Shown: one piece after another, positions 10,971 to 40,920 of the stretch | How positions within the stretch are numbered: position 1 is the first letter of the stretch | Layout of the letters: every line of letters begins with the position of its first letter | Sequence record: NC_048821.1 | Length of the DNA stretch: 64,000 nucleotides | Reading direction: 5' to 3' (one strand) | Translations under genes and position numbers: made by a program | Notes under the pieces: model-generated | The model's database searches: none | Told to the model about the DNA's origin: nothing | What the model saw: the letters and a program-made list of their open reading frames with translations, nothing else

Positions 10971-10985
10971 ACAGAATGCAGAAAA

Positions 10986-11014: not shown

Positions 11015-11049
11015 AACCTTTCAGTTTATTTTTTTTTTCGTTCAGGTTA

Positions 11050-11949: not shown

Positions 11950-11954
11950 CTAAA

Positions 11955-15117: not shown

Positions 15118-15141
15118 CTATCACACGTCCAAGGGGTCTTT

Positions 15142-17724
15142 ATGACAGCCAATAACTACAGCAGCCCCTTAGCGCGTTACGCCATTAAAGAGATGTACTC
15201 TAACCCTGGGGTGGCTCGTCAGTTTCAATTGCAGCTGACGCAGGTCTCCCCGGACGTTGGGTATATCAACGTCTTCCAATTCATGGGGCGTTATATTAAA
15301 ACACCGATCGAACGAGAATACTTTTTGATGTTTAACATGGCGGGCTTTGACGGCTCGACATGGAACTTCAAAGACTTACTCACCAGAGTAGACCCGGTGA
15401 ACAAATGGATTAACGTAGCTAAGATCTGTAAAGATCGCGGGATGATTATCGACATCTATGGAGATGACGGTCGTCTATACCCTAGGGATAAATGTTGGGT
15501 GATGTCTACTTATGACGGACAACACATCCTTGCTATCCAAAAACTAAGGGCTTTCAAATACGGTTGGGAACAAGCACGTTACTTACACTGCTATACAGTC
15601 CAGACCGATTTGTACAACCCAGTAACTAATCCTGATAATAAAGACTGGCCTCGCTTTACTTCTAACAATGGCAACAGTGTTGAAGAAAAAGATCGAATGA
15701 AGATCATTTACAGCGAGTACAAAAACCTTCCAGGATTGACCTCTGTTTATTTGAACGGGTATTTGTGGAATGGCTTCCCTAGTGATAGTCAGCTACTAGG
15801 TTCAGAGACCATCGAGATCACCAACGACCCGAGTGTTTGGAAAACTGAGACCTACGCCATTGATTCCCTACAGAACTTTTATTCTATCCGGGATGAAACT
15901 CGTAAGCTTATCATCCACCCTAAGAAAGAAGAAGGGGACTTCCTTTACCGTTACGTTTCAGACGTTTCGTTCTACTTAGTGGAAGGAAAGGGACGTGGCA
16001 TTTACTTGCATCGAAACCGAGCTAGTAACTTCCGTCAGTTAACACACCGAGACTTTGCTGTGGATTCTACCTTAGTGGATGACATGAGTAACTTGGAAGA
16101 CATGTTAAAGGACGAAACACGCTACTTGCGATTGGTGTATCGTAAAAACGATTATGCTCAAGAAATGCAGCACGAGTCTAGCGGAGTTCGTTATTTGTAC
16201 CGCATGAATGACCAAAACATCGTCGGTGCGTTAGTAGGAATTAACTCCACGGTGGAAGAGTGGAAAGCAGCCAACCTAGAGAACGCTGAAACTAACCTTT
16301 ACTTAGACCGCCCTTACGGTGAGTTAACTCACGAGCAAGCGGTGGAAGCGATTGGGTATAACCGAGCAACTCAGGTGTTGTGTGGCACACCCGTTTCTTA
16401 TGACCCTACTAGTGGAATGGAACTGGATGTACCTCCAGCGTGTCGAGAACACTTGACGTTATTTGAATATGACGCAGACGGCTTGTTCTTAAGAATGCGG
16501 GACTTCGCCAAGATACGACACGTGTTACCTTCACCGGACGCTCACCTGGTTGAATTCTATCCTGGGAAACCTGGCTTACGAATCCACATGGATATCGGTC
16601 GGGACACGATGGTGGTGGATAAAAACACAACCCCGCGTTTTTATTACCAGAAAGTCACTACCGAAGGTAATTTGGTTGGGGAACGTTTCTACGCGGTGGA
16701 AGGGGAACACTACACCTTTGACCGTGAAACTGGTACGGTCAACTGGGGATTACCTAGTTCCATGTTTATTGGCATGATTTTGTACAATGACCAAACGTTG
16801 TACAAAGAGTTTACTCTAGATCATATCGATAACTCATTGTCTTTCAGTGTTACCGAGGAATGGGTGCAAGGCGGGATGCTTACTGATGTTGCCCCGGCTA
16901 ACATCATGGTGATTATGAATCGTCGCTCGTTAATTGAAAATGTCGATTACGTGGTTCGTTTCCCTCACATCTATATTGTGAATCACCAGTACCTGAAAGC
17001 TGACGGTAATGACTTCGTACTTTATTGTAGCGAGTGGAGTCCTATTAGTGATACAGAGCCTGTAGAGCAAACTGAGCTTGGTTACGTTACAGGTGGGGTG
17101 ATTGGTCACAATACTCGCTACAACATCCGAGAGGACCGTGTGACGCGCACTACCATAGGTGGTAAAGTTTGGGATCCACTGAAAGTACCGGTTGCGGAGT
17201 TACATCCCCCTAGTGAGTTATTAAACCCGTACAATGGTCTTCCTTATGGTGTGAAACACTGGTACTTACCAATTCGTGATTGGGTTCCTTATGACCTGAC
17301 AGCAGGATGGAAAGAAGCTCGGGACCAAGACAAACGTATGAGTGATTACTTGACGTTGTTTGCCCGTAAACCAGAACCAGAAGTAATTCCAAGTTTGATG
17401 GACAAGTATCGAGTATTCAGTCCCTTTATGAATGCGGTTGTTAACCAGATACTTTTAGGTTTAATCGAACTGGATGACCTACCTCCGGGGGAATCTTACT
17501 CGGAAGACTATGTATTGCGTAAAACAGCGGAGTTCCAATGGTTGTTAGAACACGACCCCGTTACTCGCAACTACGATAGACGGTACTTTGCCGTATTCCC
17601 TTATGTTCAACAAACGATGGTTTCGGTTACTCCTAAGGAACTCATCTTCATCCGACGTATTAACGAGGTGTTCTTACAAAGCCGCGTTAATATAAATGGA
17701 CACTTTGAGGTTAAACATGTTTGA
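15142..17724 (+). CDS. Virion structural/baseplate-type protein (phiKZ gp27-position)
   Basis: 860 aa; synteny between the sheath and terminase genes. Confidence 0.6.
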   Translation: MTANNYSSPLARYAIKEMYSNPGVARQFQLQLTQVSPDVGYINVFQFMGRYIKTPIEREYFLMFNMAGFDGSTWNFKDLLTRVDPVNKWINVAKICKDRGMIIDIYGDDGRLYPRDKCWVMSTYDGQHILAIQKLRAFKYGWEQARYLHCYTVQTDLYNPVTNPDNKDWPRFTSNNGNSVEEKDRMKIIYSEYKNLPGLTSVYLNGYLWNGFPSDSQLLGSETIEITNDPSVWKTETYAIDSLQNFYSIRDETRKLIIHPKKEEGDFLYRYVSDVSFYLVEGKGRGIYLHRNRASNFRQLTHRDFAVDSTLVDDMSNLEDMLKDETRYLRLVYRKNDYAQEMQHESSGVRYLYRMNDQNIVGALVGINSTVEEWKAANLENAETNLYLDRPYGELTHEQAVEAIGYNRATQVLCGTPVSYDPTSGMELDVPPACREHLTLFEYDADGLFLRMRDFAKIRHVLPSPDAHLVEFYPGKPGLRIHMDIGRDTMVVDKNTTPRFYYQKVTTEGNLVGERFYAVEGEHYTFDRETGTVNWGLPSSMFIGMILYNDQTLYKEFTLDHIDNSLSFSVTEEWVQGGMLTDVAPANIMVIMNRRSLIENVDYVVRFPHIYIVNHQYLKADGNDFVLYCSEWSPISDTEPVEQTELGYVTGGVIGHNTRYNIREDRVTRTTIGGKVWDPLKVPVAELHPPSELLNPYNGLPYGVKHWYLPIRDWVPYDLTAGWKEARDQDKRMSDYLTLFARKPEPEVIPSLMDKYRVFSPFMNAVVNQILLGLIELDDLPPGESYSEDYVLRKTAEFQWLLEHDPVTRNYDRRYFAVFPYVQQTMVSVTPKELIFIRRINEVFLQSRVNINGHFEVKHV

Positions 17725-20700
17725 GAAAGATTTAAAAAGTCCCTCTCAGTCATCCGTCATTCCGGGAGCTGGTCCACAGCTCCCTAATGAAAATGACCGT
17801 GGGCGTATGCACTATATCTGGGAGATTTATGATCCAGATACAGTGAAACCGGGTGAAGCGCATCGTTATGTAGTTCCCCGAGAAAAAGAAATCGTAATTG
17901 ATCCTATCGCAGAAAAGAACTACGTGGTCACCCGCGTTAACTGGGAATCGGATTTAAAATCTACACTGGAACCTATCTTTGATAATGGTGAAGGCGATGG
18001 TGGTGCGGATGGCATCTTTGGCCTCCCTTCTGGTTTCCAAGGTGAGGCTGTCGTTGCAATTGACTACTCAGTCCGTCCTAACCGTGCTGTGATCGATGGT
18101 CAGGTTATGGCTCCGGGCGCGGCGTACGCGTTGTTGTACGAAGGCAACACCGTAGGAGATGACGGCAAAGTTATCTCTGTTGTATACTCTAACAACAACC
18201 AGTTAGTATCGAACCGCGTCCCAGTTACACTGGCAGCTTACCATGAGCTCAGCAACAAAGAGATCATGATTACTCAACCGTTCTCTGTGAACCGTAATCC
18301 TGATGAGTTGCCGGATGGGGCACGCTGTACTTTGGTTTGGTACGATATCAACGGTAACGTGATTCCTAAAGCCCGTACGTTGTCAGTCCAACACACTGCA
18401 ATGATGCGTGACCACCAAGTTGGTAAACGTTACATCACCCGTGTCGAGCTCGTGGCTCCTTGGTTCCTGAACACCAGTGATCCTAAAACGCTGAACGTTC
18501 CAGTCAACACTATGTTGCAGAACTTAGCGTTCCGTGCAGTAGTGCACTACAGTGATGGTTCTAAGTCAGACGAGCTTAGTATTGACGGTCAAAAGATTCA
18601 GCTACTTGGGTTAAACGAACACAAACCATCTACACCTAGTCAGCGCGGTACGTTGACCTTGGTTTATAACTTAGATTCGGATGAGTACATCTACGAAGCA
18701 CAACCTGGCAACCCTAACCAGTTCCGTGATTCTTACTGGATGTTGGCGGTACCGTTTGACGGCGCTTACTCTCCTAAACTCTACTCTTATCCGACTTGGG
18801 TAAACGGCCAATACATCCTGAAGCACTTCCTAACGGATTTAGACCGTAACTTCATGATCGACGCAACTGATCACGTACGTATTAATGAACTGTCCCCAGC
18901 TTTCCGTCCTACCACTTACGGTGTGGAACAAACGCTGGAACTGAACTGTCGTTTAAGTGACGTAGTTCCTACGTTCAAACCGATGATCATGCGTCAGTCT
19001 ACAACATTCGTGTTGAAGACACCGGGTACTGAACCAGGCAGTAAGTTTGACGTTCGTTATTCTTACGATCAGGGTTCTTACTCGGACCCCACGTTTAAGG
19101 CAGTTAACCAAGCAGACGGTCGTCAAGAAATCATCTTTGGTGGTGAATACGATGACATGGAAGATTGGTTAGAGCAGACGTACAATGCCGTTGAACCAGG
19201 GTTTAACCCGCAGCGTGAGAAAGGTCCTATTCGTCCTACTCACTTCGAAGTATTGGCGAGTTCGGGTAAAACATACGAATACGAAATCAGCCGTTATGCT
19301 GAAAAGATGTATTTGGATGTTCAAGAACCTCAAGGTCGGACTATCTACGTTCGCTGGATTCATGAATCCATTCAGGGTGATCGCTTGATTCTGGCTACCA
19401 CTGGTATCTCTATTGATGTTACCGAAGGTCCAGATACAGAAACGCCAGTTCCAACTACTATCGAGTTTGACAGTTCGGTACCTAACAGTATCGGTGAAAT
19501 GCAAATCATCGAGTTCTCTGGACGTGTTTACGATCAGAAAGGTGCGTTGGTAACAGACGGTCTAACTAAGATGTTGGTTAAAGGTGGTGTGATCTATGAT
19601 TCGACACCTCGTAAGGTCGACATTGGTTTAGACGGGACATTCCGTTTCTTTACATGGTCTGAACGTGTTAGTGGTTCTACTGAAACCTTTGAATTTGATT
19701 TTGAAGTTGCAGGTGAGGAACCAGAATACTTCCTAAGCAAAGACATTCGTATCACGACCAACCCTGAACAACAAATTGGTGAGTTCTTCCCTTACACACC
19801 AACTAAGGCGAGCATTAACAAAGCGGGTCGAGCGTACGGTCAATTACTGGACGAAGAAGGTACTCCATTGCGAGACACTGAATTCTTCTCTTTTGTTGAC
19901 AACGACTTGGACTCTATTCGCCGTGAGACTACGGATGAACAAGGTAAGTTCCTACTCACCCGTATCCACAAAGAAGGTCAAGATCGTACCACGTTCCACA
20001 TCGCAACTATGGGTGGTCGTAAGGAACATCTTTTACGCTGGGTGGAAACGGAACCATATGGTGACCGCATCATGCTTGATGTGGAAGACATGGATTTCGT
20101 TGGCGAAGAACCTCTATCGGTTACAGGTCGTGTTTACGACCAATATGGTGACCTAGTAGTAGGCGTGCCGGTTAAAATCGGTTACGGTCCTTTGTGGGCT
20201 ACTTACACTGATACTTTATCGGTTGAGAATGGTAAATACGAGCTAACGGGTTCTCCTAAAGAGCCGGGCATGAGTTACCAAGTGGTGGTCTGGACTGAGA
20301 ACGATTTCTCCTTTGGTACAGTGGAATGGTCTGAAGCACCTAAGGTAGCCTTCGACATTGTCATGAGTCCGGATAATGCACCGGAAGCGCCGGCAGGCAC
20401 CAGTGTTCGCATTTCGGGTCAGTTGGTGGATGAAGAAGGTAACAACTTCACAAGCGATAGCCGTACACCGGTTTACATGAAGGAACTGAAAGACGCGGAC
20501 GAGACGATCATCTACGCTGGTTTCGATGGACGCTTTGAAGCCGAAGTAGGTCCTTACGGGGACTGGGAAGAAACCACGTTTGTGTTCCGTCTAGAAAACG
20601 GTAACCAAGGTAGTCACATGATTCGTTGGATGGGGGAACCTCCACGTCTTGCAAAGATTACATTTGACGATGGATTACCAGTAACGAGTAAAGTTGGTGA

Positions 20701-22480
20701 GTCAGTAACCCTAAGTGGCAAGACTTTCGACCAACATGATGAGGCTTACTTACCGGGCGTTCCATTTGAATTTGAAGTGGAGTTCGCAGGCACTATCGAG
20801 AAAGCCCAATCAGACGGCAATGGCAACTGGACTTATGAAGCGGTAGGGGTTAAGTCGGGTAGTACGACTTACGGATTCTCTGCTAACAACCGTGCAGTGG
20901 GTTCTTACACCATCAACTTCACTGGTGACATAACAGTTACACCACTACCAAACGACGATCGTTTATTCCGTGTTCCTAACGGCGTTAACCGTACTATTGG
21001 CTGGTATGTGTTGGACGAGTCTGGTGCAGCTAAGGCGAACGTAACGCTGTCTTTGCGTCAAAAGGCAACGATCTATTCACCTGAACGCGATCTCGGCACC
21101 ATTACTACGGATGAACACGGCATTGCTACATTCGAAGCCCCTTATTTAGAAGGTGAAGAAAGTGGTGCTTACATCGCATCTCTGGGTGTGAAAGAAGCCA
21201 CCGTCGTTGTTGGATGGAGTGATGAGTCGGGTATTAGTGTTACCATGACGCAAATGTCTGTACCTACGATTACCTACGGAAGAGAGTTGTTATTCACTGG
21301 TGTAATGCTGGATGAAAACGGTGACCCGTTAATTCCAGATGACGTTAACACGGGCATTAGACTGGGTGGTTACGATCGCAACACGTTCGAACACATCCCT
21401 GTTTCTATCCGCGGACTAGACCCTATTACGGGCGAGTTCACAGCGTACATGACCAGCGAGACTTTCGTTACTAAAGACATCGTGCTTTACAACGAAGTGA
21501 ACAACGAACTTCATACGGTCGAATGGGCTGCCCCAGATATTACCGGTGCGTACATTGAGTGGGATCTTTCAAGTTCACCTAGTGTGTTAGTTGCTGGTGA
21601 AACTTTCCCGTTCCGAGGTAAGATCTACCAAGCTAATGGTGAGCTATATACACCGCGTGCTCCAGAGACACTTTCTGTGACGACGGATGAAGGTCCTCAT
21701 GCGGATGCAAACATCTACCAAGATGGTACAGTGATGTTAGAGATCACTAATGCATCAAGAGGTGTGCTGACTTACTCATTGTACCGTGACCCTGCGGCAA
21801 CCATCGATGACTCTCTTGAGATCGAATGGGTAGAACAAGCGTCTGTGGGATTCACCCCATACTCATACAGTGAAGTCCCTCAAGGTGAATCTGGTGAAGT
21901 TTGGCTGATCTATAAGCAAGATGGTGACCAACCAATCCAATACCGTGATGTATTAGTGGGAGTTGGTAATCCGGGTCCGGATAACGTTCCTAGAACACTT
22001 ACTACCGATGAATTCGGTATTGTGAAAGTCACGTTACCTTACAACGACACCGAATCAAGTAAGTCTATTGCCGGCATCTTAGGGGAAACGGTTCCACTAG
22101 CCATCCATAACCTCACATGGGTTGAGGATACTGTTAAAGTGGGTACTTCTTTCCGTGACCTATCAGTCCCTAGTAAAGTAGAGATTGGTGCGGAAGTGGA
22201 AGTCGTCGGTGAGGTGTTGGATAAATCCGGCGCTCTTACTGATTACAACGGAGTAGGTATTTACGATAAGACCACTCATACTTTCCACGAAAATGCCGTG
22301 AACTCGGATGGTAGCTTTAGTGTCAAACTAGGACCTTTGAACGAAGGTGACCATCATTTAGTAGTTTACACGGGTGCTGAAATTTCAGAGCACGTTGTGC
22401 GTTGGGATTCAAGCTTTGTTAATTTTGACTCTGTTGGGATTGATGAAAGCTCTAACCGTGTGGCGTTAATCACTAAATAG
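17717..22480 (+). CDS. phiKZ gp26-position structural protein with a C-terminal extension of about 1000 aa of Ig-like repeats
   Basis: Start at ATG 17717 (RBS GAGG); non-repetitive N-terminal ~570 aa, then repeats with G(R/K)V.DQ.G, DG.F and TDE.G motifs. Confidence 0.75.
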   Translation: MFEKDLKSPSQSSVIPGAGPQLPNENDRGRMHYIWEIYDPDTVKPGEAHRYVVPREKEIVIDPIAEKNYVVTRVNWESDLKSTLEPIFDNGEGDGGADGIFGLPSGFQGEAVVAIDYSVRPNRAVIDGQVMAPGAAYALLYEGNTVGDDGKVISVVYSNNNQLVSNRVPVTLAAYHELSNKEIMITQPFSVNRNPDELPDGARCTLVWYDINGNVIPKARTLSVQHTAMMRDHQVGKRYITRVELVAPWFLNTSDPKTLNVPVNTMLQNLAFRAVVHYSDGSKSDELSIDGQKIQLLGLNEHKPSTPSQRGTLTLVYNLDSDEYIYEAQPGNPNQFRDSYWMLAVPFDGAYSPKLYSYPTWVNGQYILKHFLTDLDRNFMIDATDHVRINELSPAFRPTTYGVEQTLELNCRLSDVVPTFKPMIMRQSTTFVLKTPGTEPGSKFDVRYSYDQGSYSDPTFKAVNQADGRQEIIFGGEYDDMEDWLEQTYNAVEPGFNPQREKGPIRPTHFEVLASSGKTYEYEISRYAEKMYLDVQEPQGRTIYVRWIHESIQGDRLILATTGISIDVTEGPDTETPVPTTIEFDSSVPNSIGEMQIIEFSGRVYDQKGALVTDGLTKMLVKGGVIYDSTPRKVDIGLDGTFRFFTWSERVSGSTETFEFDFEVAGEEPEYFLSKDIRITTNPEQQIGEFFPYTPTKASINKAGRAYGQLLDEEGTPLRDTEFFSFVDNDLDSIRRETTDEQGKFLLTRIHKEGQDRTTFHIATMGGRKEHLLRWVETEPYGDRIMLDVEDMDFVGEEPLSVTGRVYDQYGDLVVGVPVKIGYGPLWATYTDTLSVENGKYELTGSPKEPGMSYQVVVWTENDFSFGTVEWSEAPKVAFDIVMSPDNAPEAPAGTSVRISGQLVDEEGNNFTSDSRTPVYMKELKDADETIIYAGFDGRFEAEVGPYGDWEETTFVFRLENGNQGSHMIRWMGEPPRLAKITFDDGLPVTSKVGESVTLSGKTFDQHDEAYLPGVPFEFEVEFAGTIEKAQSDGNGNWTYEAVGVKSGSTTYGFSANNRAVGSYTINFTGDITVTPLPNDDRLFRVPNGVNRTIGWYVLDESGAAKANVTLSLRQKATIYSPERDLGTITTDEHGIATFEAPYLEGEESGAYIASLGVKEATVVVGWSDESGISVTMTQMSVPTITYGRELLFTGVMLDENGDPLIPDDVNTGIRLGGYDRNTFEHIPVSIRGLDPITGEFTAYMTSETFVTKDIVLYNEVNNELHTVEWAAPDITGAYIEWDLSSSPSVLVAGETFPFRGKIYQANGELYTPRAPETLSVTTDEGPHADANIYQDGTVMLEITNASRGVLTYSLYRDPAATIDDSLEIEWVEQASVGFTPYSYSEVPQGESGEVWLIYKQDGDQPIQYRDVLVGVGNPGPDNVPRTLTTDEFGIVKVTLPYNDTESSKSIAGILGETVPLAIHNLTWVEDTVKVGTSFRDLSVPSKVEIGAEVEVVGEVLDKSGALTDYNGVGIYDKTTHTFHENAVNSDGSFSVKLGPLNEGDHHLVVYTGAEISEHVVRWDSSFVNFDSVGIDESSNRVALITK

Positions 22481-22490
22481 GAAATAATAA

Positions 22491-25400
22491 ATGGCAGGTA
22501 TTATCAGAGGGAACTTACTCGATGCTGAAGGCAACGAAGTAAACCCGGGTAAACCCGTCACATTAAAGGCCGTCCGATCGGACGGCCTACCTGATGTGAC
22601 TATCACGACCAATGATTCTGGTCATTGGTCCTTAGAAGTGAACGCTGAAGTCGACTCTCAGGTCGACTTCACTTTTATTTACAATGGGGTGGATGTAGGA
22701 GCACACGCAGTGCGTTTCATTGAAACAGCTGAAGTAGTAACCTTGCCGTATTCTAATTTCCGCGTTAAAGTGGGTAACACTGGTGTTATTGCATTTGCGG
22801 TAAAAGACGATCAAGGTAATGGGGTTCCGTATGCGGATGTAACTATCCACCGTGACGACGAAAACTCCGAACCAGTGACAACTCTAAGGACTGACCAATT
22901 TGGTATCGTCACTTATACGGTTCCGCCTCACAACGTTTATGAACGTGTGGGGTTCTGGGCTAAGTCTGGAGGCACTACTGCGTTTTGGGGTGTTCAGTAC
23001 GAAGATGGGGAAGAAGAGTTTGCTATTTCAATGGCTAACTTCCATTACACTGAGCAATTAGGTTTGGGTAATGAACTATTAGTCATGGGCGGTGGTAATG
23101 ACCCTTGGGGATCGTTAATTTACAACCCACCTAAAGTTCTTTTTAATAAAGACACTCTGACTGAGGTCACTTACACCGAGATCTCTGATGACTTAACCAA
23201 CAACGTATTCCTAACAGTCGCGGGGTTATCTGAAGGTAATCACAACTTTGTGTTTGCAATGGAATCCGAATACCGTGAGTTTGTTGTTGAATGTGGGGAC
23301 TTCCAAGAAGAAACCATTAACACAGTAAAGCGCCATTACCCGACAGCGACCAAGTTTTTTGTAAACATGTGGTCAACGCTGGAAGCGACAGTTCAAGTGG
23401 ATGGTGTGGACTATAAGCCTCACGGCGTAGTTTACATGACCGTTGAGAGAAACGAAGATTCGATACAATCTTTGGTTTGGCCTAATGGTAAATTCGGTTA
23501 TCCTGTTTCTGGTAAAAACGGTGACGTCTACCAATACACCATTAAGAACGGTGACGCGGAAGTTCTGGCAGAGCATCCGGCTTACGTCGTTGATGGTAGT
23601 GTAAAACTTTGTGAATACTCAGTGGATACCCTCCCTACCTTGGGCAAGGGCACAGTTGCGTTCGCTATTGTTGATGATGAAGAGAAGCCAGTGACTGGCG
23701 GGTTTACTCTCGTTAACCCTGGAACCAATGCATCTGAACAAGTTGAGGTTACTGACGAATTTGGTATCGTTGAAGTAGAAGTAAGTCGTGCTTCAGGTGA
23801 GAATGAAACATTCGTGTTGTGTAGTATCGGTGGGTTTGCTAGTGTGAATCACAAAGTTACCTTCACTGGCGCTCCTGTGGCTTCTGAGTTCCGTAACTTG
23901 GATATCCCAACACAAGGTGATACTGAGACTCCTATCACTGTAACAGGGCAAGTCTACGACCAAGGTGGAAGTGCATTTAAACCACCTCGATTGGGTGTGT
24001 TTGATAAACAGAGCTTAACACATCAAGCATTCGACGCTTCTCTTATCGGAAGTGACGGTACGTTCTCTTTTGAGTATGGTCCTTTGTCACAAGGTCAACA
24101 CGACCTCGTCTTAGGTTCTTCAGGTATCATCTCTGAGAAACGCACACATTGGTCCATTGGTTTCCCTGATGGTCTTCGCACCGAACGCATGAACTACTCC
24201 ACATACCCTAACGCTTATGTTGGTGACGACGCTATTGTGGCAGTCCGTGCAAGTATCGTAGAAGACGGGTTACTGGTTCCTGTTGTCGGTGTTCCTGCGA
24301 CAGCTTACATCAATGGCCCTGGTGTGACCGACGTTGAACTGGAAACTAAGTTAACTGACGCTAACGGTATTGCGGAATTCAACATCCCGGCTTCAGTCAA
24401 TGAAACTACCTTAAACGGCAACTACGCCATCACGATGGTGGTCGGCCCTAACGTAGTTAGAACTGACATTACTTGGTTGGAAGGTTCTGATGTAATATCA
24501 GGGTTTAGTGACTTGGATTACAACCCGACCATTAATACTGGTGGTGAACTGGTTTACACCTACCGTCCTTTAAACCAAGACGGCCAACCAATGGCGGACC
24601 GTGGCGTTTACGTGACTCCGATAGATCATTTCCAGATTGGTGCTTACAATGCTACCATTTATGAAAATGCTGACGGGTCCTACACTGCGGAATTCCCAAC
24701 AATGGAAGACGGGACTTACGACGTTGTATTCCATTCAGGAAACGCTCAGGAACGCATGTCATTGACTTGGGGTGCGTATCCGGTAATCAACCCTACCTCA
24801 GTACTACTTGACTTCCTATCACCTACCTCTGGTGTAGTAGGAAGTGACGCTATTGTGTCGGGTAAGATTGTGGATGAGAACGGTAGTGTGATCCGACCTA
24901 CCGCTGGAATGCGTTTAACTGTTCGTGATGAAACTGGCTCAGAAATCCACGTTAGGGTTAAACCTGATGGGTCTTGGTCATTCGCTGCGAACTCCACCAT
25001 CGCTAAGACTAAGTCTTACAACATCCTGCATAGCGGAACAAACCTCTATGTTCATCAGATCGATTTCCATGAAACTCCTACGGTTACTTTCACCGACTAC
25101 ACTGGTGACAAAGTCGCTAAGACTCACGAGGCGATGTTAGCTACTGTGGTTAAGGATGTGGATGGTAACGGCATTCCAGGGATGTTGGTGGAGTACAAGA
25201 ACGATGACACTCACTACGGTTCAGTAATCACTGATGAGTTTGGTATCGCGGAATTCACTATTCCGTTTAACCTAGAGACCATCGTTTCCCCTACAGTAGA
25301 ACAGGATTATGTTGTTGCTCATATTAGCGACACTATCTCTGATGACGTTACTGTTCGTTGGGCAGGTGATGATGAAAACTCCGCAATTGAAATCATTGAC

Positions 25401-33074: not shown

Positions 33075-33083
33075 TGTAAAGTA

Positions 33084-33116
33084 ATAACTCAGGTGGGTTA
33101 GACCCACCTGAGTTAT
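33084..33116 (+). terminator. Intrinsic terminator
   Basis: 15-bp perfect stem ATAACTCAGGTGGGT-tag-ACCCACCTGAGTTAT followed by CTTTATTTT. Confidence 0.85.
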
Positions 33117-33221
33117 CTTTATTTTCCACTTATTTAAACCCCACTGAGAATTTATTGAACGAAACGCGTAACTGGGTTCTCCCTTGGCCCGGTGTGTATA
33201 ACAAGCAAAAGGAAGATACTA

Positions 33222-36200
33222 ATGACGGGTGTTATTAGAGGAAACTTGTTGAAAGGTGACACGACGGTAAAACCTGATGGACCCGTCAGTCTTACCTTGA
33301 AACGAGACGATGGACTTCCAGATACGGAAGTCGTAACTGATGCTGATGGTAACTGGCAAGTCGAGGTTGAGTCGGCAACGAAAAAGAAAGTCAAATTTAG
33401 TTTCTTTGACAAAAGCAAACCGCTTGGTGAACACGAAGTGGAGTTTGTCAAGGAATTGGAAATCATTCCTGCATCCGGTCGATTCACTAAAGAAAACCTG
33501 AATGGTTTCCACGGTCGATTAATTGATCAAGATCTGAATCCGATCTCTGATGCGGAGATCACTTACAAACGTAAGTACGACGACGCTGAAAACTGGATCG
33601 AAAGCAGCGTCACAACAAACGAACACGGTTACTTCAACGTAATGTGGGGGATTAACGAACTGGAGCCTAAGAAGCTTTACATTCAAATCTCGTACGGGGA
33701 TTTGAGTGATGAGTTTACTTACGACTTTTCTGATGGTTCTTTAACCACTTATTTTGTTGACCCTGTGGGACAAGAAGAGTTAGCCCCGGGTGAGACCTTG
33801 AAAGTAGTCGGACGTGCATTCCCGAATTACGGTTCAGGTGACGTTAACCTCACCGAGGATGCGTTCCTTGGTCACTTTGTGGACAACCCACTTTATTTCG
33901 TGGATAACAGTGAATCATTAGAGAGTGGCGGTAAGTTCTCCATCGATGTGGATGGGACACACGCCACTTTAATGAGTAACAACGGTAACCTAGAAGTAAA
34001 ACCACCTGTGGTTCAGGGGTTAAAGCCGCCCGCGATTATGCGATTTGGTGTACGCAGCGTGCTTATCAACAACCCGGATCTGCATTACAGTGGAAGTTTC
34101 CCACTTACTTGCTCGGTGTATACAGCGGATTACAAAAAGCCGAATGTGGATTCTAGTGAGTTGGAATTCTACGATTTCAATAACTCCCCGCATTCTTACG
34201 GCAGTTACCTGACAGAAGGTAATGACCGTTGGTATGCTGGTGAAGACTTTGTTAGTATTCGGGAAGGTGGGTATAAACACACAGTACTTTGTCGTGGCCG
34301 ACCACTAGCCGATAATTACGTCCGCTGTTTTACTGACGGTGATATGCTTAACTTGGTAGGCGGCACTAGAAACTGGGTCCATGTGGGCAACGAAGTCGTA
34401 AACCGTCTTGCGTTGACTGACAACCAAGGAAATCCAAGATCGGGAGTAACGGTTTCTTTCTTCAAAGGAGATTCGGAAACAGCGTTCCGTCAAGCAACCA
34501 CAGACGACCTAGGTTTAGTGGAAATCACGCTCCCTACGGAGAGTGAAGTAACTCGCACCTTTATGCGTGCAGAAGCAGATGGTGTTGAAGCAACATGGTA
34601 CAATGACTGGGTCCCAGTCACACTAGAAGTTGTAGAGAGTGTTTCTACACCTTTCCTTCCGGTTTATTTTGACCGAGATTTCTTCATGTTTTTAACTACT
34701 CCTTTGGGTAAAGATGGTCAACCATTTAACCCTCAGGACAGTGGTGTATACGAAGGTCTCACGATTCAGTTATTAGACCGTTGGTACGTTCGTCCTTACC
34801 TCAGTAAGCGCGATGGGGCTTGTGAATACCTCCTTCCACTACAAGACGATACCAACCCAATTAAAGGCGGTCGGTTATCTATGACCTGTGACCACTTCCA
34901 CACAGAAAAAGATGTCGTGGTTGGTAAGCGTGTGGGATTAAACCCACTGCCTTACGCTCAGGGAACAAGTGTTGCTAATCAAGACCTAACCACTGGGTGG
35001 TTGTTGTTGGACGACGCTCTGGAACCAGTAGAAGGTGGTGTGATTGATGTCTGGATCGATGATCGAAGTGGTGCAGTAGATCATAAACTAACCACCGACA
35101 AATACGGGATTGTGGAAATCACAGTTCCTTTTAAAGAAGGTGAGTTGGTACGCAAAGCTTACGCTAAACACGGGACGGATCAATTTGAACTAGAATTGAT
35201 GTGGACTGAGAAAAACGCAGCTTGTCAAATTACGATCACTCCTCCTCAAGGTGACATCGGTGTCGATGAACTCGTCACGTTTGACGTACGTTCGTTAGAT
35301 CAACACGGTAACGAAGTTAATGAAGAATCCCCAGTTCTCTTTAACATGTATGGCTTCTCTAACCTCGGTGTTTACGACAAAGTCACACACAAAGTCGAAT
35401 ACCTTGGGTCAGACCGCACTACCGATGTAAACGTACAGACTAACGATAAAGTTGGTGAGCAAGAGTTGGTGTTCTTTACCGAAGCTGGATTTAAAACGGT
35501 TAAGTTCAATGCCATCCAACGTCCGGTTCGTAATACAGATCGCTTAGAGTACAGCTCGAGTACCGCATTCCCTGATTCTGAAGCCTTGGTCGGCTTCCGT
35601 GTTTCTGATGATAATGGGCAAGGTGTTCCGGGTGAAACTGTCGAGATTCGATACTTAGGTGAAGAAGTCGATAAGTTAGTAGGCAATACTTGGATTAAGG
35701 TTCACGAAGGTGGGTCTGACGAAGTCATCACAACTTTGACTACGGATGAGTTCGGTATTGTCGAATTCCCTACCACCATGCCAACGGATACCGGAACTCA
35801 TAGCTGGAGTGGTACAACGGTAAGTGCGGGTCCTAAAGACAGAAAGGGTAAAACAGACGTTTACGTCCATTGGCGTGACGGGATTATCACTGACCTGAAG
35901 AATGTGAAGTCGATCCCGGTTACCGAGTCGGGTGAGAAAACGGTGTTCTCCGCAGAGTTGTGGGAAAACGTCAGTGCTGACAACCAAGTCATCACTGAAG
36001 ACAACATGCACATTCACGTTTACATAAAAGAACTAGATCGTACTCTAGAGAACACGGGCACTTTCTATAAGGGTCATAAAGTTTGTTCAATAGATGAGGT
36101 CTTACCGGACGGCACATACCACGCGGTACTCTATGTTCAGAACGCACAACACGAGGTTACTTTATCGTGGGGTTCTGTGGCAGGTGTTAATCCGACTTCA

Positions 36201-39200
36201 TTGGTTTACAACAACTTTGTTCCTAAGAAGTTCCCTATTGGTGCGCGTTACATATCTTCGGTCAGCCTTAACGATGATGACGGTAAGATTACTGCAATGA
36301 CTAGAGCGGTTAATGTAGAGGTTTACAACTCTGACAACCAAGTCATGGGCGAAGGTGTAATCGATGTTGATGGTAACGGTCGCATCCAATGGTCTACCAA
36401 CTACGGTACTCCGAACCCAATCGAAACGTATGAGTTCCGAGATGGTTCAAAGGTGTTGTTCTCTATGACGGCTGGTCTTGTTACGTGGCCTAAGATTAAG
36501 ATGACTCCTTACAACCTAACCAACCCGGTTATCGGTCAAACCATTACCGTTGGCGCGTTTGTTGAGAACGAGGAAGAGACGGAAGCAGTAGATGGCATCT
36601 ATGTGACGATGGAAGACAACTACGGTAACTTGCTTGCTGAAGGGGAAACGGATGAATTCGGTTTCTTTGACATCAGCTATGACCGTATTGGAGAAGAGTC
36701 ACATATGTTCGTTCGAGCTAAATGTGGTCAAAGTTCTAACTATGAGACCGCTCCTTGGACTGACACCAACTCACCTCGTTGGGTAGACTTGCAGCTCACC
36801 AACCCACCAACTAGCGTGGATAACGACGGAAGTGTCTTCATGAACGGTATGATGCGGGATCAGGATGGTAATCCTGCTGACCGTGTTGCTTACAGCGTTT
36901 ATGATGTTCGTAACCGTAGCAGTATCGGTGGTCGTAGTAAATCAGACGGTCGCATCGAACCTTCCTTGGACAACATTGCATTGGGTAAAAACCCTGTCGT
37001 TGTAACTAGTGCCAACGGGATGGTTAGACATGTGGTCAATTACAAAAAGATGCCGGCGTCTGCTGATATCGTAAGTGGTCATAGTGAAGCCATGGCCTTT
37101 GATGGCAATCCTGAGGTCACTTATCAGCTGAAGGATAGTGAAGGGAACAACTACGTGCCTAACGAGGGCGAGGTGGTAAACTTACTTACTCAAAGCGGGC
37201 GCTACCAGAAACACGGCACCCCAGTAGGTCCGACGGGTTTAGTTACGATGCCTTGGTTCAGTAAAGGTATAGGGCATGAAGTCTACATCCTTGCTAACGA
37301 AGACATGTCTAAGGCTCTCAACACCACGCCTACTGAGCACATTGCGATTAAGGAAGTTAAAGTATTCCACGCTAGTGACTACCCTCAGTCTGGTGACCCG
37401 GGCATCATGTTGGCAAACGTTCAAGACTTTAACGATAACCCTATCCCTAATATCGAGTTCCGTGTGAAAAGCACTACCGATGGTTTCGAGTTAGATGCGG
37501 TTTACAAAACTGATGCCAACGGTGTTGGTAAGGTGTTGTTAGCCGGCCAGTCTGACGGAACAAACATCTCGGTCGAATTGACCTGTGGTAATGCAGTTAC
37601 AAGCTACTCTATTGGTTGGGAAGATGGAGGTGAGTCTAGTCCCGGAACGGTGATTTTAGATGCATTACCTTCGGAAGCTTCGGAAGACGACAATCTTCCA
37701 ATTACAGGTAAAGTTGTTGATAGTGAAGGGAATGGGATTAGTGACGCGTTCGTTTACTTGTACATAGGGACGCCGAATAGTACCTATTACCAAGAGGACT
37801 CTGTTAACGCGGATGCCGATGGACGTTTCTCTATCACCCCTTGGCTGGAATCAGGAAACCTCAAGTTCCTTGTAGTTAACGGGAACGACTTTGATAGTGC
37901 CGAAGTATTGTGTTACTCAACACCTATGGTTACTATGACTAACCTCACTATTCGTGATATTCACGAAAATCAGCGTGGTCGTGTCTCTGCCCTCTATAAG
38001 GACAGATACGGTAATCCGGTCCAAGGTGAAACTGTTGAGTTCCGATTTGACAGCGCAAGTGGTGAGTTAATAGATACCAAAACCACTAACGAGAAGGGTC
38101 ATGCGTGGACTGAAGTTACTTGGACGCAAGCACAAGGACACAGTGAGATTTACGCTGTTTGTAATGAGGCATCGGACTCTACCTACATTAATGTTGCAGA
38201 AGCGGGTGATGTCGCTCCAGTGGTTTCTACTATCGCTTGGCACAACAATGTTGGTTTCGTTCATCCAGAAATGCCAGCACTGATAATGGGTAAGGTATTA
38301 GACCAACACGGCAACCCGTACTCTAAAGCGGAGGTGAACTATTATCGTCCTGACATCGGATCAAGGAATATGACTTATACTGACTCAGATGGTAACTTTA
38401 CCTTAGAGGTCAGTCCGGGTCGTTTCGATCCTACCCGTAAGGATTTGTTTGGTGTACGTGGTAAGTTTACTGAGATCGCTCCTAAGTGGAACATGGGAAC
38501 CAAGTTCAAGTCTGGAGCTATTAAGTTTAACAAACCTGATTTTCCTGAAGGCATTCCATACGACTCAACCATCACCTTATCCGGTACCGTAAAAGATACC
38601 GATGGAAGCATGGCTGAAGTGGGTGACGCTGTAATTAAACTGAAGGCGCGCGTTCGATCTGAAGGTTCGGAGCTAGGGTTGAAAGAGTTCACGGTTTCAC
38701 CTGACGGTACTTGGTCTGTTGACATCCCAACGCCGGATAAAGAAATTAAGTTCGATGTCTGGTTGGAAGATGAATACGGGAATGGTTGTGATCGTGTCGC
38801 ACTTTGGGCAGGTCCACCTAAGACCAAGACACTAGCGTTTGCTCCACCTACACATGACTACATCCCTGAAGGTCAGAATCATACACGAGTGGTTTACTAC
38901 TTGCTGGATGAAGAAGGCAAACCTATGCCTAACGTATCCATCGACTTTAAATATAAAGGCGATGCTGATTCTCGTTGGAATTATGGTTCAATGGATCGTA
39001 CGGATGAAGATGGTCACGTTAACACCCGTATTCAGTTACGCAACAGCACGACTATTGAGTTACGTATTAAAGCTGAAGGGTTAACGACCAAACACACTAT
39101 CGTCAGAACAAGTGATCCGGTCGGCACGAACTTAGTTGGGGTTTATTACCCAGACTCAACCAGTGTCTCTCGTGGATTAACTGGTTGGGCTAAGTTAACT

Positions 39201-40874
39201 GACATTAGCGGTAAAGCGATCCCTGACCTTAGTGATGTGAAGGTTGGTATCTACGACCTTGTGACTAGGGAAACATACGACCTGAAACCTTGGATGTTGG
39301 ATAACATCAACATTGCCTATAACTTTAATCCGCCAGCTGGCAGACATCGCTTCATGCAGTACTCCGACGCTTACATGGACTACTACCAAGTTCCTAAGGT
39401 GGTAGAGGTGACCGAAAGTGATCCTTCTGAGGTGGTAGTGCCTACGCAGGTAGTGTTATCTCCGACCATAGAAAACGGTGGTCTTGTGACACGGTCGAAC
39501 ATGAACATTAAAACGGGATTCCGTTTAGTTGACGACCAGTACCGTGATTGGAATGCAACTGGCGAGGTAAATGTTTACGATGATTACGTTGGGCTACTGC
39601 GTGAGACCAAATCAGAGGGTGAAGTTCATCAGGTTCAGATATATGATCCACTCGATCCTGGTTTACGCACTTGGCGTGTGTTCGCTGACTACAAAGAAGT
39701 TGGCACAATCCCAATCTTCATTGTGGAGGGTGACGACGTTATGAACTTGGTACCGGGATCTACTGTAGTTAACCGAGTGGATCAAACGGCGGTTGCGATG
39801 TTCGGTTGTTATTCAGCGACTAACATGACCCCTACTGTCGGTAAAACAGTAAACGTTTGGGAAGTTGGAAAGGAAGGAGCTAAACTGAGTCTAACCACTG
39901 ACGATAGAGGATTAGTTGCGTTTGACTTACCGGCACAAACCACACCGGGTGTTTACCACTACATAGTGGAGTACGACGGTAATCAAGTGCCGTTCGACTT
40001 CCATTGGGTAGCTGCGGATATGGTATTGGGTGAAAGCTTTGGTGAGACATTCTTCCCGACTGTATGGGCTGAAGAAGAGTACCAAGGGTTCAAGGCCGAG
40101 GTAGTCGACCAGAACGGTGACGTCGTAAGTAACGGTGTGAAAGGTATTTCGGTTAAGGACCTTGATGATCCTGAAATGAATTACTGGTACAACATCGATG
40201 GGGAATATGTGAGACCAGCTTACTTTACTAAGGGCAAACACTTAATTGGCATGTCGGCTGGTGCGGTAGCTGAGACGTTTAACATCTTCAGCGGTAATGC
40301 TACTGGACTCCGTACTTTGGCTTACGCTCAAGGTAAGGGTCTGGATGGTCAGAACCTGAAGGTGGCGTTTGGTCTAACTAACGAATCATTCGTACCGATT
40401 AACGGTGCAGTGGTTAAAGTGTGGATAGGAGAGAAATCAGGTGATTCTCATTACGAGGTGACTACTGGTACTTACGGTATCGCCGAGTTTGACATTCCTC
40501 AGCCTGAGGGTGTGACACGCACTTGGTTGTACGCGGAATCAAATGGTCATGAGTTGAAGATACCGGTTGTTTGGGCTAAGAAACCAACACCAAGTAAATT
40601 CAGCACACTGACAGTTCCGACTTCAATCCCGGCAGGATCTACGCTGGACTTCTCTGCAACGATTGTTAACCAAGATGATACGCCAGATAGCATCGATAGC
40701 TGGAAAGCTATTCATGGTGGTGTGTACGTTAAGGCTAACCAGAAGTTTGAGTACTTGTTCTCAGCGTCTGGCGATCATTCGTTAAACATCATTGGTGATC
40801 TATCACCGGGTACTCACGAAATTGTGTTCTTCACATTGGCTGGGTACGAGGTGAAACAAATCACTATCACTTAA
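33222..40874 (+). CDS. Second giant Ig-like repeat protein (~2550 aa), paralogue of 22491..33074
   Basis: Start reassigned to ATG 33222 (RBS AGGAAG); N-terminus MTGVIRGNLL parallels MAGIIRGNLL; about 10 TD..G repeat motifs. Confidence 0.8.
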   Translation: MTGVIRGNLLKGDTTVKPDGPVSLTLKRDDGLPDTEVVTDADGNWQVEVESATKKKVKFSFFDKSKPLGEHEVEFVKELEIIPASGRFTKENLNGFHGRLIDQDLNPISDAEITYKRKYDDAENWIESSVTTNEHGYFNVMWGINELEPKKLYIQISYGDLSDEFTYDFSDGSLTTYFVDPVGQEELAPGETLKVVGRAFPNYGSGDVNLTEDAFLGHFVDNPLYFVDNSESLESGGKFSIDVDGTHATLMSNNGNLEVKPPVVQGLKPPAIMRFGVRSVLINNPDLHYSGSFPLTCSVYTADYKKPNVDSSELEFYDFNNSPHSYGSYLTEGNDRWYAGEDFVSIREGGYKHTVLCRGRPLADNYVRCFTDGDMLNLVGGTRNWVHVGNEVVNRLALTDNQGNPRSGVTVSFFKGDSETAFRQATTDDLGLVEITLPTESEVTRTFMRAEADGVEATWYNDWVPVTLEVVESVSTPFLPVYFDRDFFMFLTTPLGKDGQPFNPQDSGVYEGLTIQLLDRWYVRPYLSKRDGACEYLLPLQDDTNPIKGGRLSMTCDHFHTEKDVVVGKRVGLNPLPYAQGTSVANQDLTTGWLLLDDALEPVEGGVIDVWIDDRSGAVDHKLTTDKYGIVEITVPFKEGELVRKAYAKHGTDQFELELMWTEKNAACQITITPPQGDIGVDELVTFDVRSLDQHGNEVNEESPVLFNMYGFSNLGVYDKVTHKVEYLGSDRTTDVNVQTNDKVGEQELVFFTEAGFKTVKFNAIQRPVRNTDRLEYSSSTAFPDSEALVGFRVSDDNGQGVPGETVEIRYLGEEVDKLVGNTWIKVHEGGSDEVITTLTTDEFGIVEFPTTMPTDTGTHSWSGTTVSAGPKDRKGKTDVYVHWRDGIITDLKNVKSIPVTESGEKTVFSAELWENVSADNQVITEDNMHIHVYIKELDRTLENTGTFYKGHKVCSIDEVLPDGTYHAVLYVQNAQHEVTLSWGSVAGVNPTSLVYNNFVPKKFPIGARYISSVSLNDDDGKITAMTRAVNVEVYNSDNQVMGEGVIDVDGNGRIQWSTNYGTPNPIETYEFRDGSKVLFSMTAGLVTWPKIKMTPYNLTNPVIGQTITVGAFVENEEETEAVDGIYVTMEDNYGNLLAEGETDEFGFFDISYDRIGEESHMFVRAKCGQSSNYETAPWTDTNSPRWVDLQLTNPPTSVDNDGSVFMNGMMRDQDGNPADRVAYSVYDVRNRSSIGGRSKSDGRIEPSLDNIALGKNPVVVTSANGMVRHVVNYKKMPASADIVSGHSEAMAFDGNPEVTYQLKDSEGNNYVPNEGEVVNLLTQSGRYQKHGTPVGPTGLVTMPWFSKGIGHEVYILANEDMSKALNTTPTEHIAIKEVKVFHASDYPQSGDPGIMLANVQDFNDNPIPNIEFRVKSTTDGFELDAVYKTDANGVGKVLLAGQSDGTNISVELTCGNAVTSYSIGWEDGGESSPGTVILDALPSEASEDDNLPITGKVVDSEGNGISDAFVYLYIGTPNSTYYQEDSVNADADGRFSITPWLESGNLKFLVVNGNDFDSAEVLCYSTPMVTMTNLTIRDIHENQRGRVSALYKDRYGNPVQGETVEFRFDSASGELIDTKTTNEKGHAWTEVTWTQAQGHSEIYAVCNEASDSTYINVAEAGDVAPVVSTIAWHNNVGFVHPEMPALIMGKVLDQHGNPYSKAEVNYYRPDIGSRNMTYTDSDGNFTLEVSPGRFDPTRKDLFGVRGKFTEIAPKWNMGTKFKSGAIKFNKPDFPEGIPYDSTITLSGTVKDTDGSMAEVGDAVIKLKARVRSEGSELGLKEFTVSPDGTWSVDIPTPDKEIKFDVWLEDEYGNGCDRVALWAGPPKTKTLAFAPPTHDYIPEGQNHTRVVYYLLDEEGKPMPNVSIDFKYKGDADSRWNYGSMDRTDEDGHVNTRIQLRNSTTIELRIKAEGLTTKHTIVRTSDPVGTNLVGVYYPDSTSVSRGLTGWAKLTDISGKAIPDLSDVKVGIYDLVTRETYDLKPWMLDNINIAYNFNPPAGRHRFMQYSDAYMDYYQVPKVVEVTESDPSEVVVPTQVVLSPTIENGGLVTRSNMNIKTGFRLVDDQYRDWNATGEVNVYDDYVGLLRETKSEGEVHQVQIYDPLDPGLRTWRVFADYKEVGTIPIFIVEGDDVMNLVPGSTVVNRVDQTAVAMFGCYSATNMTPTVGKTVNVWEVGKEGAKLSLTTDDRGLVAFDLPAQTTPGVYHYIVEYDGNQVPFDFHWVAADMVLGESFGETFFPTVWAEEEYQGFKAEVVDQNGDVVSNGVKGISVKDLDDPEMNYWYNIDGEYVRPAYFTKGKHLIGMSAGAVAETFNIFSGNATGLRTLAYAQGKGLDGQNLKVAFGLTNESFVPINGAVVKVWIGEKSGDSHYEVTTGTYGIAEFDIPQPEGVTRTWLYAESNGHELKIPVVWAKKPTPSKFSTLTVPTSIPAGSTLDFSATIVNQDDTPDSIDSWKAIHGGVYVKANQKFEYLFSASGDHSLNIIGDLSPGTHEIVFFTLAGYEVKQITIT

Positions 40875-40886: not shown

Positions 40887-40920
40887 ATAACCGAGTAGGA
40901 CTTTCGTCCTACTCGGTTAT
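40887..40920 (+). terminator. Intrinsic terminator
   Basis: 15-bp perfect stem ATAACCGAGTAGGAC-tttc-GTCCTACTCGGTTAT followed by TTATGCA. Confidence 0.85.

Follow-up and report, generated by a model that had tools for sequence, protein, structure and literature searches.

Giant arrays of predicted immunoglobulin-like (Ig-like) repeats lie between a baseplate gene and the large terminase gene (terL) of Photobacterium phage PDCC-1. We analysed the last 64,000 bases of the PDCC-1 record (NC_048821.1, 237,509 bp), i.e. record positions 173510-237509, hereafter the window. Positions are given in window coordinates (record coordinate minus 173,509) unless the record is named. PDCC-1 is a phiKZ-like jumbo phage (Gorgonvirinae, Aphroditevirus) infecting Photobacterium damselae subsp. 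damselae. With a nuclear shell protein and split RNA polymerases among its annotated genes, it belongs to the nucleus-forming type. The three array genes and the terminase gene are named gp186 to gp189 in RefSeq. The array genes cover 23,004 nt, or 9.7% of the PDCC-1 genome, and the labels for these genes in the public records are 'hypothetical protein', 'virion structural protein' or 'putative invasin'. The features of the locus are as follows.

11955-14093, minus strand: sheath gene
15142-17724, plus strand: gp185, homologue of phiKZ gp27 (core scaffold of the baseplate outer periphery); its 3' end overlaps the gp186 start
17717-22480, plus strand: gp186, 1587 aa, a gp26-like baseplate module followed by ten predicted Ig-like repeats
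17717-19498, plus strand: gp26-homologous module of gp186 (phmmer against PDB 9xqd; phrog_3430)
19499-22477, plus strand: C-terminal extension of gp186, ten tandem ~97-aa predicted Ig-like repeats (10 profile matches, gaps of 3-12 aa)
22491-33074, plus strand: gp187, 3527 aa, 36 tandem repeat slots; its own ribosome-binding site (RBS) overlaps the gp186 stop
22491-22772, plus strand: N-terminal domain of gp187, candidate docking domain, of the conserved subtype that starts all free-standing chains
33084-33116, plus strand: terminator-like hairpin between gp187 and gp188, 15-bp stem, T-rich tail
33222-40874, plus strand: gp188, 2550 aa, 26 repeat slots (16 detected, ~10 beta-rich); own RBS, open reading frame (ORF) open from 33192
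33222-34388, plus strand: N-terminal module of gp188, two recognisable domains and a ~200-aa beta-rich stretch
40887-40920, plus strand: terminator-like hairpin after gp188
40963-44175, plus strand: gp189, large terminase (TerL), conserved right-hand border of the slot (phrog_2, E 6.9e-55)

The first array is fused to a homologue of a phiKZ baseplate protein. Residues 59-568 of gp186 match residues 35-544 of PHIKZ026 (PDB 9xqd chain a, 552 aa) with E 1.3e-47 using phmmer, and the match to phrog_3430 has E 1.2e-140. Homologues of gp26 were found in 290 phage records, and in each the match stops near gp186 residue 570-580; those of closer outgroups are short, with 571 aa (a Raoultella phage) and 575 aa (an Aeromonas phage). 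The upstream neighbour gp185 matches PHIKZ027 of PDB 9xqd (E 3.4e-43), the 'virion structural protein' of 11pb (E 7.9e-69) and phrog_3184. The gp186 gene lies directly downstream of this gp27 homologue and divergent from the sheath gene, an order identical to that in phage fnug of the phiKZ species, where gp27 (898 aa), gp26 (552 aa) and terL stand in succession with 135 nt between gp26 and terL. The likeness to phiKZ gp26 covers a near whole-chain alignment, the gene order sheath, gp28, gp27, gp26 and the presence of most of the partner proteins; the difference is that phiKZ gp26 stops at the module end with terL next, whereas the PDCC-1 lineage adds Ig-like domains and up to five array genes. 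The sequence-only reading of this stretch had placed a short gp26 beside terL in phiKZ, which fnug bears out, and had described a ~1000-aa Ig-like C-terminal extension on the gp26-position protein, where we find ten repeats tiling residues 602-1594. An in-frame upstream ATG at 17696 would make gp186 1594 aa long.

The platform on which gp26 sits in phiKZ has counterparts in PDCC-1. In the phiKZ cryo-electron microscopy (cryo-EM) atlas of 2026, gp26 is located in the baseplate outer periphery, where it cross-links the outer 'star-lobe' fibre platform (five copies in each lobe, 30 in the virion), and gp27 is the core scaffold of this periphery; the whole is a six-lobed star ~107 nm across and serves as the platform for twelve fibres (PMC13250141). 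Local tblastn searches with fnug proteins identified PDCC-1 homologues of gp128 (wedge protein, 3e-80), gp139 (7e-26), gp157 (5e-35) and gp130 (1e-6), while gp127 gave no homologue in PDCC-1 at E <= 1e-3. The N-terminal docking parts of gp131, gp133 and gp135 have PDCC-1 matches (1e-6 to 9e-16) in two 'minor tail protein' genes, and PDCC-1 has further annotated fibre genes besides these gp131-type docker homologues. Since most of the platform partners and the ordinary fibres are kept, the Ig arrays appear to be an addition. By analogy to phiKZ, the first array is probably anchored at the outer rim of the baseplate through the gp26 module. The earlier proposal of anchoring through a structural protein stands for this array, as a covalent fusion to the homologue of a protein placed in the phiKZ baseplate periphery.

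We counted the repeats with a profile iterated on the three proteins themselves, with detection at E < 1e-3. The profile detects 60 repeats (10 in gp186, 34 in gp187 and 16 in gp188), most with E 1e-10 to 1e-20, at a period of ~97 aa. By spacing there are 72 slots (10 + 36 + 26), close to the roughly 70 domains that had been estimated from length, and the two giant ORFs have the extents claimed for them (22491-33074 with 3527 aa and 33222-40874 with 2550 aa). The 12 undetected slots comprise 2 in gp187 and 10 in gp188. The gp187 repeats tile the protein from residue 2 to the last residue except for a two-slot stretch at ~183-384 without a significant repeat. The description of the two giants as made wholly of repeats therefore holds well for gp187 (34 of 36 slots) and only in part for gp188 (16 of 26).

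The arrays are old, given the low identity among paralogous repeats (6-30%) and the absence of direct DNA repeats longer than 48 nt; tandem DNA repeats were not found in the arrays either, and a recent duplication at the DNA level is ruled out on these grounds. Neighbouring repeats are the least alike pairs. Clustering yields three repeat subtypes in a non-random order, subtype A being the most Big_1-like, and A is followed by C in 20 of 23 cases (12/12 in gp187, 7/9 in gp188 and 1/2 in gp186). A three-domain super-repeat was unsupported by lag analysis, and the ordered A-C pair holds instead. Unlike neighbours in an ordered series of subtypes resemble the pattern of folded tandem arrays. As a side observation, the arrays (19499-40874) have a G+C content of 0.463 vs 0.423 in the rest of the window, and contain fewer sigma-70-like promoter matches (13) than the 26.8 +/- 5.8 expected from shuffled sequence.

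Structure prediction supports an Ig-like beta-sandwich fold for the repeats. Pfam recognises weak, overlapping beta-sandwich families in the arrays, namely Big_1, CarboxypepD_reg and the bacterial and eukaryotic macroglobulin (MG) families. The summed Big_1 (PF02369) scores of gp187 (107.3 bits) and gp188 (121.3 bits) are above the curated cut-off of 34.9, while that of gp186 (27.9 bits) is below it; only 2-3 Big_1 repeats are individually significant, and CarboxypepD_reg and the MG families score on the same stretches. A direct sequence search of PDB with gp187 gave no match. We modelled an A-C-B triplet (gp187 residues 2760-3049) with AlphaFold2, using 15 in-register paralogous triplets as the input alignment, and obtained three all-beta domains with a mean predicted local distance difference test score (pLDDT) of 88.8; the predicted template modelling score (pTM) of 0.59 leaves the relative orientation of the domains uncertain. 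Foldseek against PDB returned SbsC and Sap (S-layer), invasin (1cwv, E 8e-9), MpIBP (5irb) and SiiE (2yn3), both with E ~1e-7, titin, and complement and alpha-2-macroglobulin MG arrays, all within a range of 4e-9 to 1e-6. The TM-scores are low (~0.25), as is to be expected where domain angles differ. Among predicted viral structures the first twelve matches are sister-phage proteins, followed by Ig-array proteins of other phages, with a protein of Erwinia phage Y3 carrying Big_1-type repeats at rank 16. The model and its invasin, SiiE, MpIBP, S-layer and macroglobulin matches agree with the Ig-like fold that had been read from the letters of the DNA.

The second and third arrays are separate proteins rather than fragments of a broken gene, as indicated by their own ribosome-binding sites and starts and by the hairpins. 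gp187 starts 10 nt past the gp186 stop in another frame, with its RBS overlapping that stop, and is translationally coupled; gp188 has its own RBS and an ATG at 33222. The hairpins after gp187 and after gp188 are the two strongest terminator-like hairpins of the region. The relatives keep the same starts, and none of the isolates compared has a broken copy of any of the three genes. Joining of these ORFs by read-through or frameshifting was rejected in view of the separate starts and ribosome-binding sites, the hairpins and the change of frame.

All the free-standing chains in the seven phages compared open with one domain subtype (2 chains per phage in Aphroditevirus, 4-5 in Tidunavirus). When the first 95 residues of gp187 or gp188 are used as the query, the N-termini of other chains match with E 1e-8 to 1e-26 and internal repeats with 1e-4 to 1e-8. 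This first domain is 75-100% identical among the Aphroditevirus phages (79-100% for that of gp187), vs 26-63% for the domains that follow. The N-terminal layout of gp187 and gp188 is alike, with two recognisable domains and then ~200 residues not assigned to a repeat, and has positional orthologues in the second and third Tidunavirus ORFs. In AlphaFold models the two N-terminal domains reach a pLDDT of 75-86 and the following stretch is modelled poorly but as beta-rich; the N-terminal 400 aa of gp188 have a pLDDT of 65.8. The conserved first domain is thus a candidate docking part that may meet an invariant virion partner. At the other end, gp187 finishes in a repeat without a distinct distal binding domain, and the last 85 aa of gp188 match no repeat.

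It might be argued that gp187 and gp188 are not virion proteins at all, and are instead made in the infected cell to act as decoys or matrix binders after lysis or to serve some intracellular role. We found no direct evidence for their incorporation into the virion, and each gene ends with its own strong terminator-like hairpin, as this explanation would have it. We nevertheless consider it very unlikely, as the domain type is typical of extracellular display, the array genes stand between baseplate genes and terL in every relative, the conserved N-terminal domain points to a fixed partner, and the Pfam scan of the array proteins turned up no signal peptide or secretion-related family.

The closest relatives of the repeat outside the sister phages are found in bacterial adhesins. 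We scored the 60-repeat profile against 1.84 billion representative proteins and obtained 55,658 matches at E <= 1e-3, of which 493 are at E <= 1e-30. The best matches after the sister phages are giant bacterial surface proteins, including proteins of 6890 and 6416 aa from Orbus sturtevantii, others from Serratia and Symbiopectobacterium, and one from Yersinia that bears the name inverse autotransporter adhesin Ilp. One bacterial top match (P0010) has an inverse-autotransporter beta-barrel, 29 Big_1 repeats and a jacalin-like end. The inverse-autotransporter beta-barrel (PF11924) and LysM are absent from all three phage proteins in the Pfam scan, and so is a distal ligand-binding tip (C-type lectin-like or jacalin) at E <= 0.01. 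The Pfam Big_1 score per domain is ~3-5 bits in the phage vs ~60 bits in the bacterial proteins, i.e. about twenty times lower. The label 'putative invasin' was given to the sister phages in GenBank for the likeness to Big_1/invasin arrays. The phage arrays have a repeat type in common with the invasin-like adhesins but fall outside that family, and the label is misleading.

These comparisons place the phage arrays beside two known designs. The inverse-autotransporter adhesins (invasin 1cwv and the proteins of Serratia, Orbus and Yersinia) are alike in fold and in having arrays of tens of ~95-aa domains; they are mounted on an outer-membrane barrel, while the phage array is mounted on a baseplate protein. 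SiiE (2yn3) and MpIBP (5irb) have the same stalk design of 100-nm scale built from dozens of beta-sandwiches, a likeness of fold only, but they carry ligand-binding domains at the tip, which we did not find in the phage arrays. The Pfam scan of the phage proteins detected neither RTX (repeats-in-toxin) repeats nor features of type I secretion.

The interval between gp26 and terL is filled in all the relatives compared, with chains that vary in number and length. The slot proteins are listed below, in gene order.

PDCC-1 and Aphrodite1 (Aphroditevirus): 1587-1588, 3527-3529 and 2548-2550 aa
2 TSL-2019 (Aphroditevirus): 1587, 3908 and 2549 aa
phiKT1019 (Aphroditevirus-like): 1587, 3522 and 1825 aa
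244-kb metagenomic scaffold (uncultured): 1579, 3712 and 1444 aa
pTD1, VP4B and phiKT1028 (Tidunavirus): gp26 fusion of 2481-2486 aa, then four or five chains of 756-1726 aa

The slot spans ~21-26 kb in all of them, divided into 3 ORFs in Aphroditevirus and 5-6 in Tidunavirus, and arrays were present in all seven phages compared, which answers the earlier suggestion that the locus be compared across related phages. The number of Ig-like domains fused to gp26 is ten in Aphroditevirus, ~19-20 in Tidunavirus and ~6-8 in uncultured relatives. Long gp26 fusions (1169, 1358, 1576-1587 and 2481-2486 aa) were found only in this lineage, in 11 clusters with a gp26 module at least 64% identical. Word-indexed searches for the whole giants returned only 4, 3 and 11 clusters, all of this lineage, and the whole-length relatives of gp187 form four clusters among 5.8 billion, all from isolates.

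The slot can hold something else. A more distant uncultured relative (locus L017, a 71-kb contig of Logan SRR24908277) has a 1169-aa gp26 fusion with four detected repeats, and a single protein of 1826 aa (10304-15784) between this fusion and terL. The 1826-aa protein has BNR/Asp-box, Sortilin-Vps10 and YCF48-type propeller matches and lacks the conserved N-terminal domain of the Ig chains. BNR/Sortilin-type propeller folds are common in carbohydrate-active proteins. The terminase of this relative is short (775 aa). The sequence-only reading had called the arrays an insertion, which is right in comparison to phiKZ but not as a general description, given the propeller protein in the slot of the distant relative; the gp26-terL interval is better described as a variable cargo slot.

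PDCC-1 also encodes a fourth Ig-array protein away from the slot. This protein, gp112 (1507 aa; NC_048821.1 117275-121798, outside the window; locus L015 17275-21798), combines an N-terminal module of ~590 aa, which has no match in PDB, with ten C-terminal repeats of the family found in the slot, and in architecture mirrors gp186 on another carrier. The nearest relatives of the gp112 repeats are in the second Tidunavirus ORF.

The PDCC-1 locus is a mosaic of its two nearest sequenced relatives, 2 TSL-2019 and Aphrodite1, with at least six switches. The blocks were called by informative sites in the comparison of PDCC-1 with these two phages (nearest relative first in each count).

15174-20392: nearest 2 TSL-2019, 870 vs 137 informative sites
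20491-21203: nearest Aphrodite1, 112 vs 36 informative sites
21212-21956: nearest 2 TSL-2019, 269 vs 9 informative sites
21958-22855: nearest Aphrodite1, 175 vs 30 informative sites; last gp186 Ig-like domains and first gp187 domain
22856-27199: nearest 2 TSL-2019, 1601 vs 48 informative sites; 97-100% DNA identity
27200-39213: nearest Aphrodite1, 3594 vs 287 informative sites; 85-98% DNA identity

Past 39213 the nearest-relative signal is mixed. At the protein level, each ~97-residue window of gp187 residues 195-1067 has 100% identity to 2 TSL-2019 and 26-60% to Aphrodite1. From ~1650 onwards in gp187 and throughout gp188, the identity by window is 82-100% to Aphrodite1 (97% and 94% overall) and 39-96%, mostly below 75%, to 2 TSL-2019. 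The switch points do not fall exactly on domain borders.

The ratio of nonsynonymous to synonymous substitution rates (dN/dS) is 0.04-0.22 in the arrays over thousands of codons, which indicates real, constrained coding sequence rather than chance. The corresponding values against 2 TSL-2019 are 0.016-0.04 for the sheath, gp184, gp185, the gp26 module and TerL. We conclude that purifying selection acts on each domain of the arrays, somewhat relaxed, and that the diversity comes mainly from exchange among divergent alleles. Gene-wide positive selection was not seen.

One could suppose from this variability that the arrays are the primary receptor-binding proteins and set the host range, replacing or dominating the ordinary fibres. 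Variation and recombination are higher in the locus than anywhere else in the region, as is typical of host-range determinants, and the number and length of the chains differ among phages of different hosts. The hosts themselves speak otherwise: the isolation host was Vibrio alginolyticus for 2 TSL-2019 and Aphrodite1 (Australia and Greece) and Photobacterium damselae for PDCC-1 (Mexico), yet long blocks of their arrays are 92-100% identical between the two host genera, so that the arrays, whatever their ligand, are not what separates these hosts. Taken with the retention of the phiKZ-type fibre homologues with their docking N-termini and of the other annotated fibre genes, the lack of a distinct distal binding domain in gp187 and the dN/dS values without gene-wide positive selection, this makes a host-range role quite unlikely in our judgement.

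A passive role has also to be considered, in which the chains form a bumper or spacer skirt without specific binding that would prevent premature triggering of the baseplate, clumping of virions or contact of the baseplate with non-host surfaces. Such a skirt would fit uniform arrays without a tip domain, a strong constraint on fold combined with free exchange of whole blocks, and the architectural arrays (S-layer, titin-like) among the structural matches. We give it a low probability, since a spacer would be costly at nearly 10% of the genome, the repeats are closest in sequence to adhesins, and the conserved order of subtypes with the diversity maintained suggests more than bulk.

Ig-like domains are well known on tailed phages as surface-exposed accessories, thought to bind carbohydrates weakly. 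T4 Hoc and the C-terminus of lambda gpV are examples on structural proteins, and a mucus-adherence model has been proposed. Those proteins have one to a few Ig domains each on the capsid or the tail tube, while the PDCC-1 lineage has 10 to ~40 domains per chain and ~72 per locus, with the baseplate rim as the predicted site. We found no Hoc-like capsid-binding region and no match to Hoc-like PHROGs in the array proteins, the only non-repeat module being the gp26 baseplate module.

Appendages elsewhere on the virion are known in 'hairy' jumbo myoviruses, with hair-like appendages on the tail of Erwinia phage vB_EamM_Y3 and fibres on the capsid of phage PTm1 (review, PMC13282480). Y3 is a jumbo phage with many thin appendages on the tail sheath, and encodes a Big_1-type protein of 588 aa, the rank 16 structural match of our repeat model. 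gp187 and gp188 could in the same way be hairs on the sheath, neck or capsid, with gp186 alone at the baseplate. Neither protein has a gp26-like module, and gp112, with its ten repeats on another 590-aa carrier, shows that more than one mount is possible. Nevertheless, the array genes sit among those of the baseplate periphery, translation of gp187 is coupled to that of gp186, and one recombination block covers the end of the gp186 array and the first gp187 domain, a hint of a shared interface. We regard this arrangement as rather unlikely. No report of hairs in Gorgonvirinae was found in the literature.

With moderate confidence, we favour the reading that the three genes encode virion appendages, i.e. 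long thin Ig-like chains around a phiKZ-like baseplate. The five-domain rod of invasin is ~18 nm long, i.e. ~3.6 nm per domain. By simple arithmetic on this figure the chains of gp186, gp187 and gp188 would be ~36, 130 and 95 nm long; the earlier estimate that a 36-domain chain would exceed 100 nm holds at 3.5-4 nm per domain. The tails of relatives are ~227-232 nm in published descriptions. The ten-domain tail of gp186 would stick out by ~35-40 nm at as many as 30 positions along the baseplate rim. For gp187 (~130 nm) and gp188 (~95 nm) the conserved N-terminal module would be the docking part, with either this platform or gp186 as its partner. Together the chains would form a wide, multivalent net of low affinity that enlarges the capture radius. 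Its first contact, weak and reversible, would be with polysaccharides on the surface of cells or particles, and the virion would be held near the surface until the ordinary fibres reach their specific receptor. Recombination among co-circulating phages would supply the diversity, the fold of each domain being kept by purifying selection. We infer the incorporation of gp187 and gp188 into the virion, their attachment point, their extended shape and any binding activity, while the binding of glycans is suggested by analogy only.

The reliance of glycan binding on analogy weighs against the appendage reading, and so do several observations. The C-terminus of gp26 itself makes contacts in the phiKZ platform (PMC13250141), so that an extension of 1000 aa may not leave all 30 positions alike. 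gp187 and gp188 have no homology to a known attachment domain or virion anchor, and the Pfam scan (E <= 0.01) found no tip, lectin or enzymatic domain in them. Ten of the 12 undetected slots have a probability below 35% of being the repeat using hhalign, and AlphaFold gives these slots low-confidence beta structure only. The 92-100% identity of long blocks of the PDCC-1 arrays to those of the Vibrio alginolyticus phages also stands on this side. We found in the literature no virion proteomics, electron microscopy or cryo-electron tomography evidence for these proteins, and for Gorgonvirinae as a whole no study of them, no virion proteomics and no unusual fibres; the published negative stain of relatives describes only a head and a contractile tail.

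We speculate further that gp186, gp187 and gp188 could be joined head to tail, each conserved N-terminal domain docking on the last domain of the preceding chain, although we would give this arrangement only a slender chance. The hints are that the last gp186 domains and the first gp187 domain were inherited as one block from a different parent than the flanks, and that the total length of the locus is similar despite the different partition into chains. If true, PDCC-1 would carry composite tentacles of ~70 domains and ~250 nm, as long as its tail, rooted at up to 30 baseplate points. The ORF boundaries would be interchangeable joints of one modular thread, and recombination would swap stretches of the thread, like cassette exchange in surface antigens.

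The chains around the baseplate, as we read them, combine known elements at an unusual scale. Accessory Ig-like domains of phages, 'hairy' jumbo phages and giant bacterial adhesins made of Ig repeats are already known. The unusual points are the scale of the arrays, with up to ~40 domains per chain and ~72 per locus, their mounting on the gp26 of a phiKZ-type rim, the free chains with one shared N-terminal domain and the fluid partition into 3-6 chains. Phage Ig-like domains are usually a few accessory beads of debated function, while here they take up ~10% of a 237-kb genome. Because the first array is fused to a protein with a solved baseplate seat, the purpose of such domains becomes structurally addressable, including the point at which the chains emerge from the platform, their length and stiffness, and what they touch on cells. 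The lineage also offers a natural series for the diversification of tandem-domain fibres, with 6 to ~20 domains on gp26, 3 to 6 chains and a propeller protein. As these phages are being tried against Vibrio and Photobacterium in aquaculture, a description of their first-contact apparatus has practical value.

The terminase at the right-hand border of the slot carries an insertion. gp189 has 1070 aa vs 777 aa in pTD1 and VP4B, with one in-frame insertion of ~290 aa in the ATPase domain, and is 82-91% identical to the Tidunavirus enzyme outside the insertion. The insert looks intein-like at the C-terminal end, its first residue is unusual, and it has no Pfam match. The long TerL is also found in all the Aphroditevirus relatives and in phiKT1028. 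The RefSeq label of gp189, 'DarB-like antirestriction', is wrong. The RefSeq note 'Phage terminase, large subunit @ intein-containing' is found on gp021 and gp022 (NC_048821.1 21613-25139, outside the window), which are RNA polymerase beta subunit and DNA helicase genes; it looks misplaced, or may hint at more inteins.

Elsewhere in the window we observed a tandem-duplicated two-gene unit at 4377-7083, in which ORF 4377-5015 is 30% identical to ORF 5726-6370 (E 5e-32) and ORF 5015-5722 is 39% identical to ORF 6367-7083 (E 2e-49). The adjacent ORFs 57006-58184 and 58172-58897 are weak paralogues, with 30% identity over 132 aa (E 1e-8).

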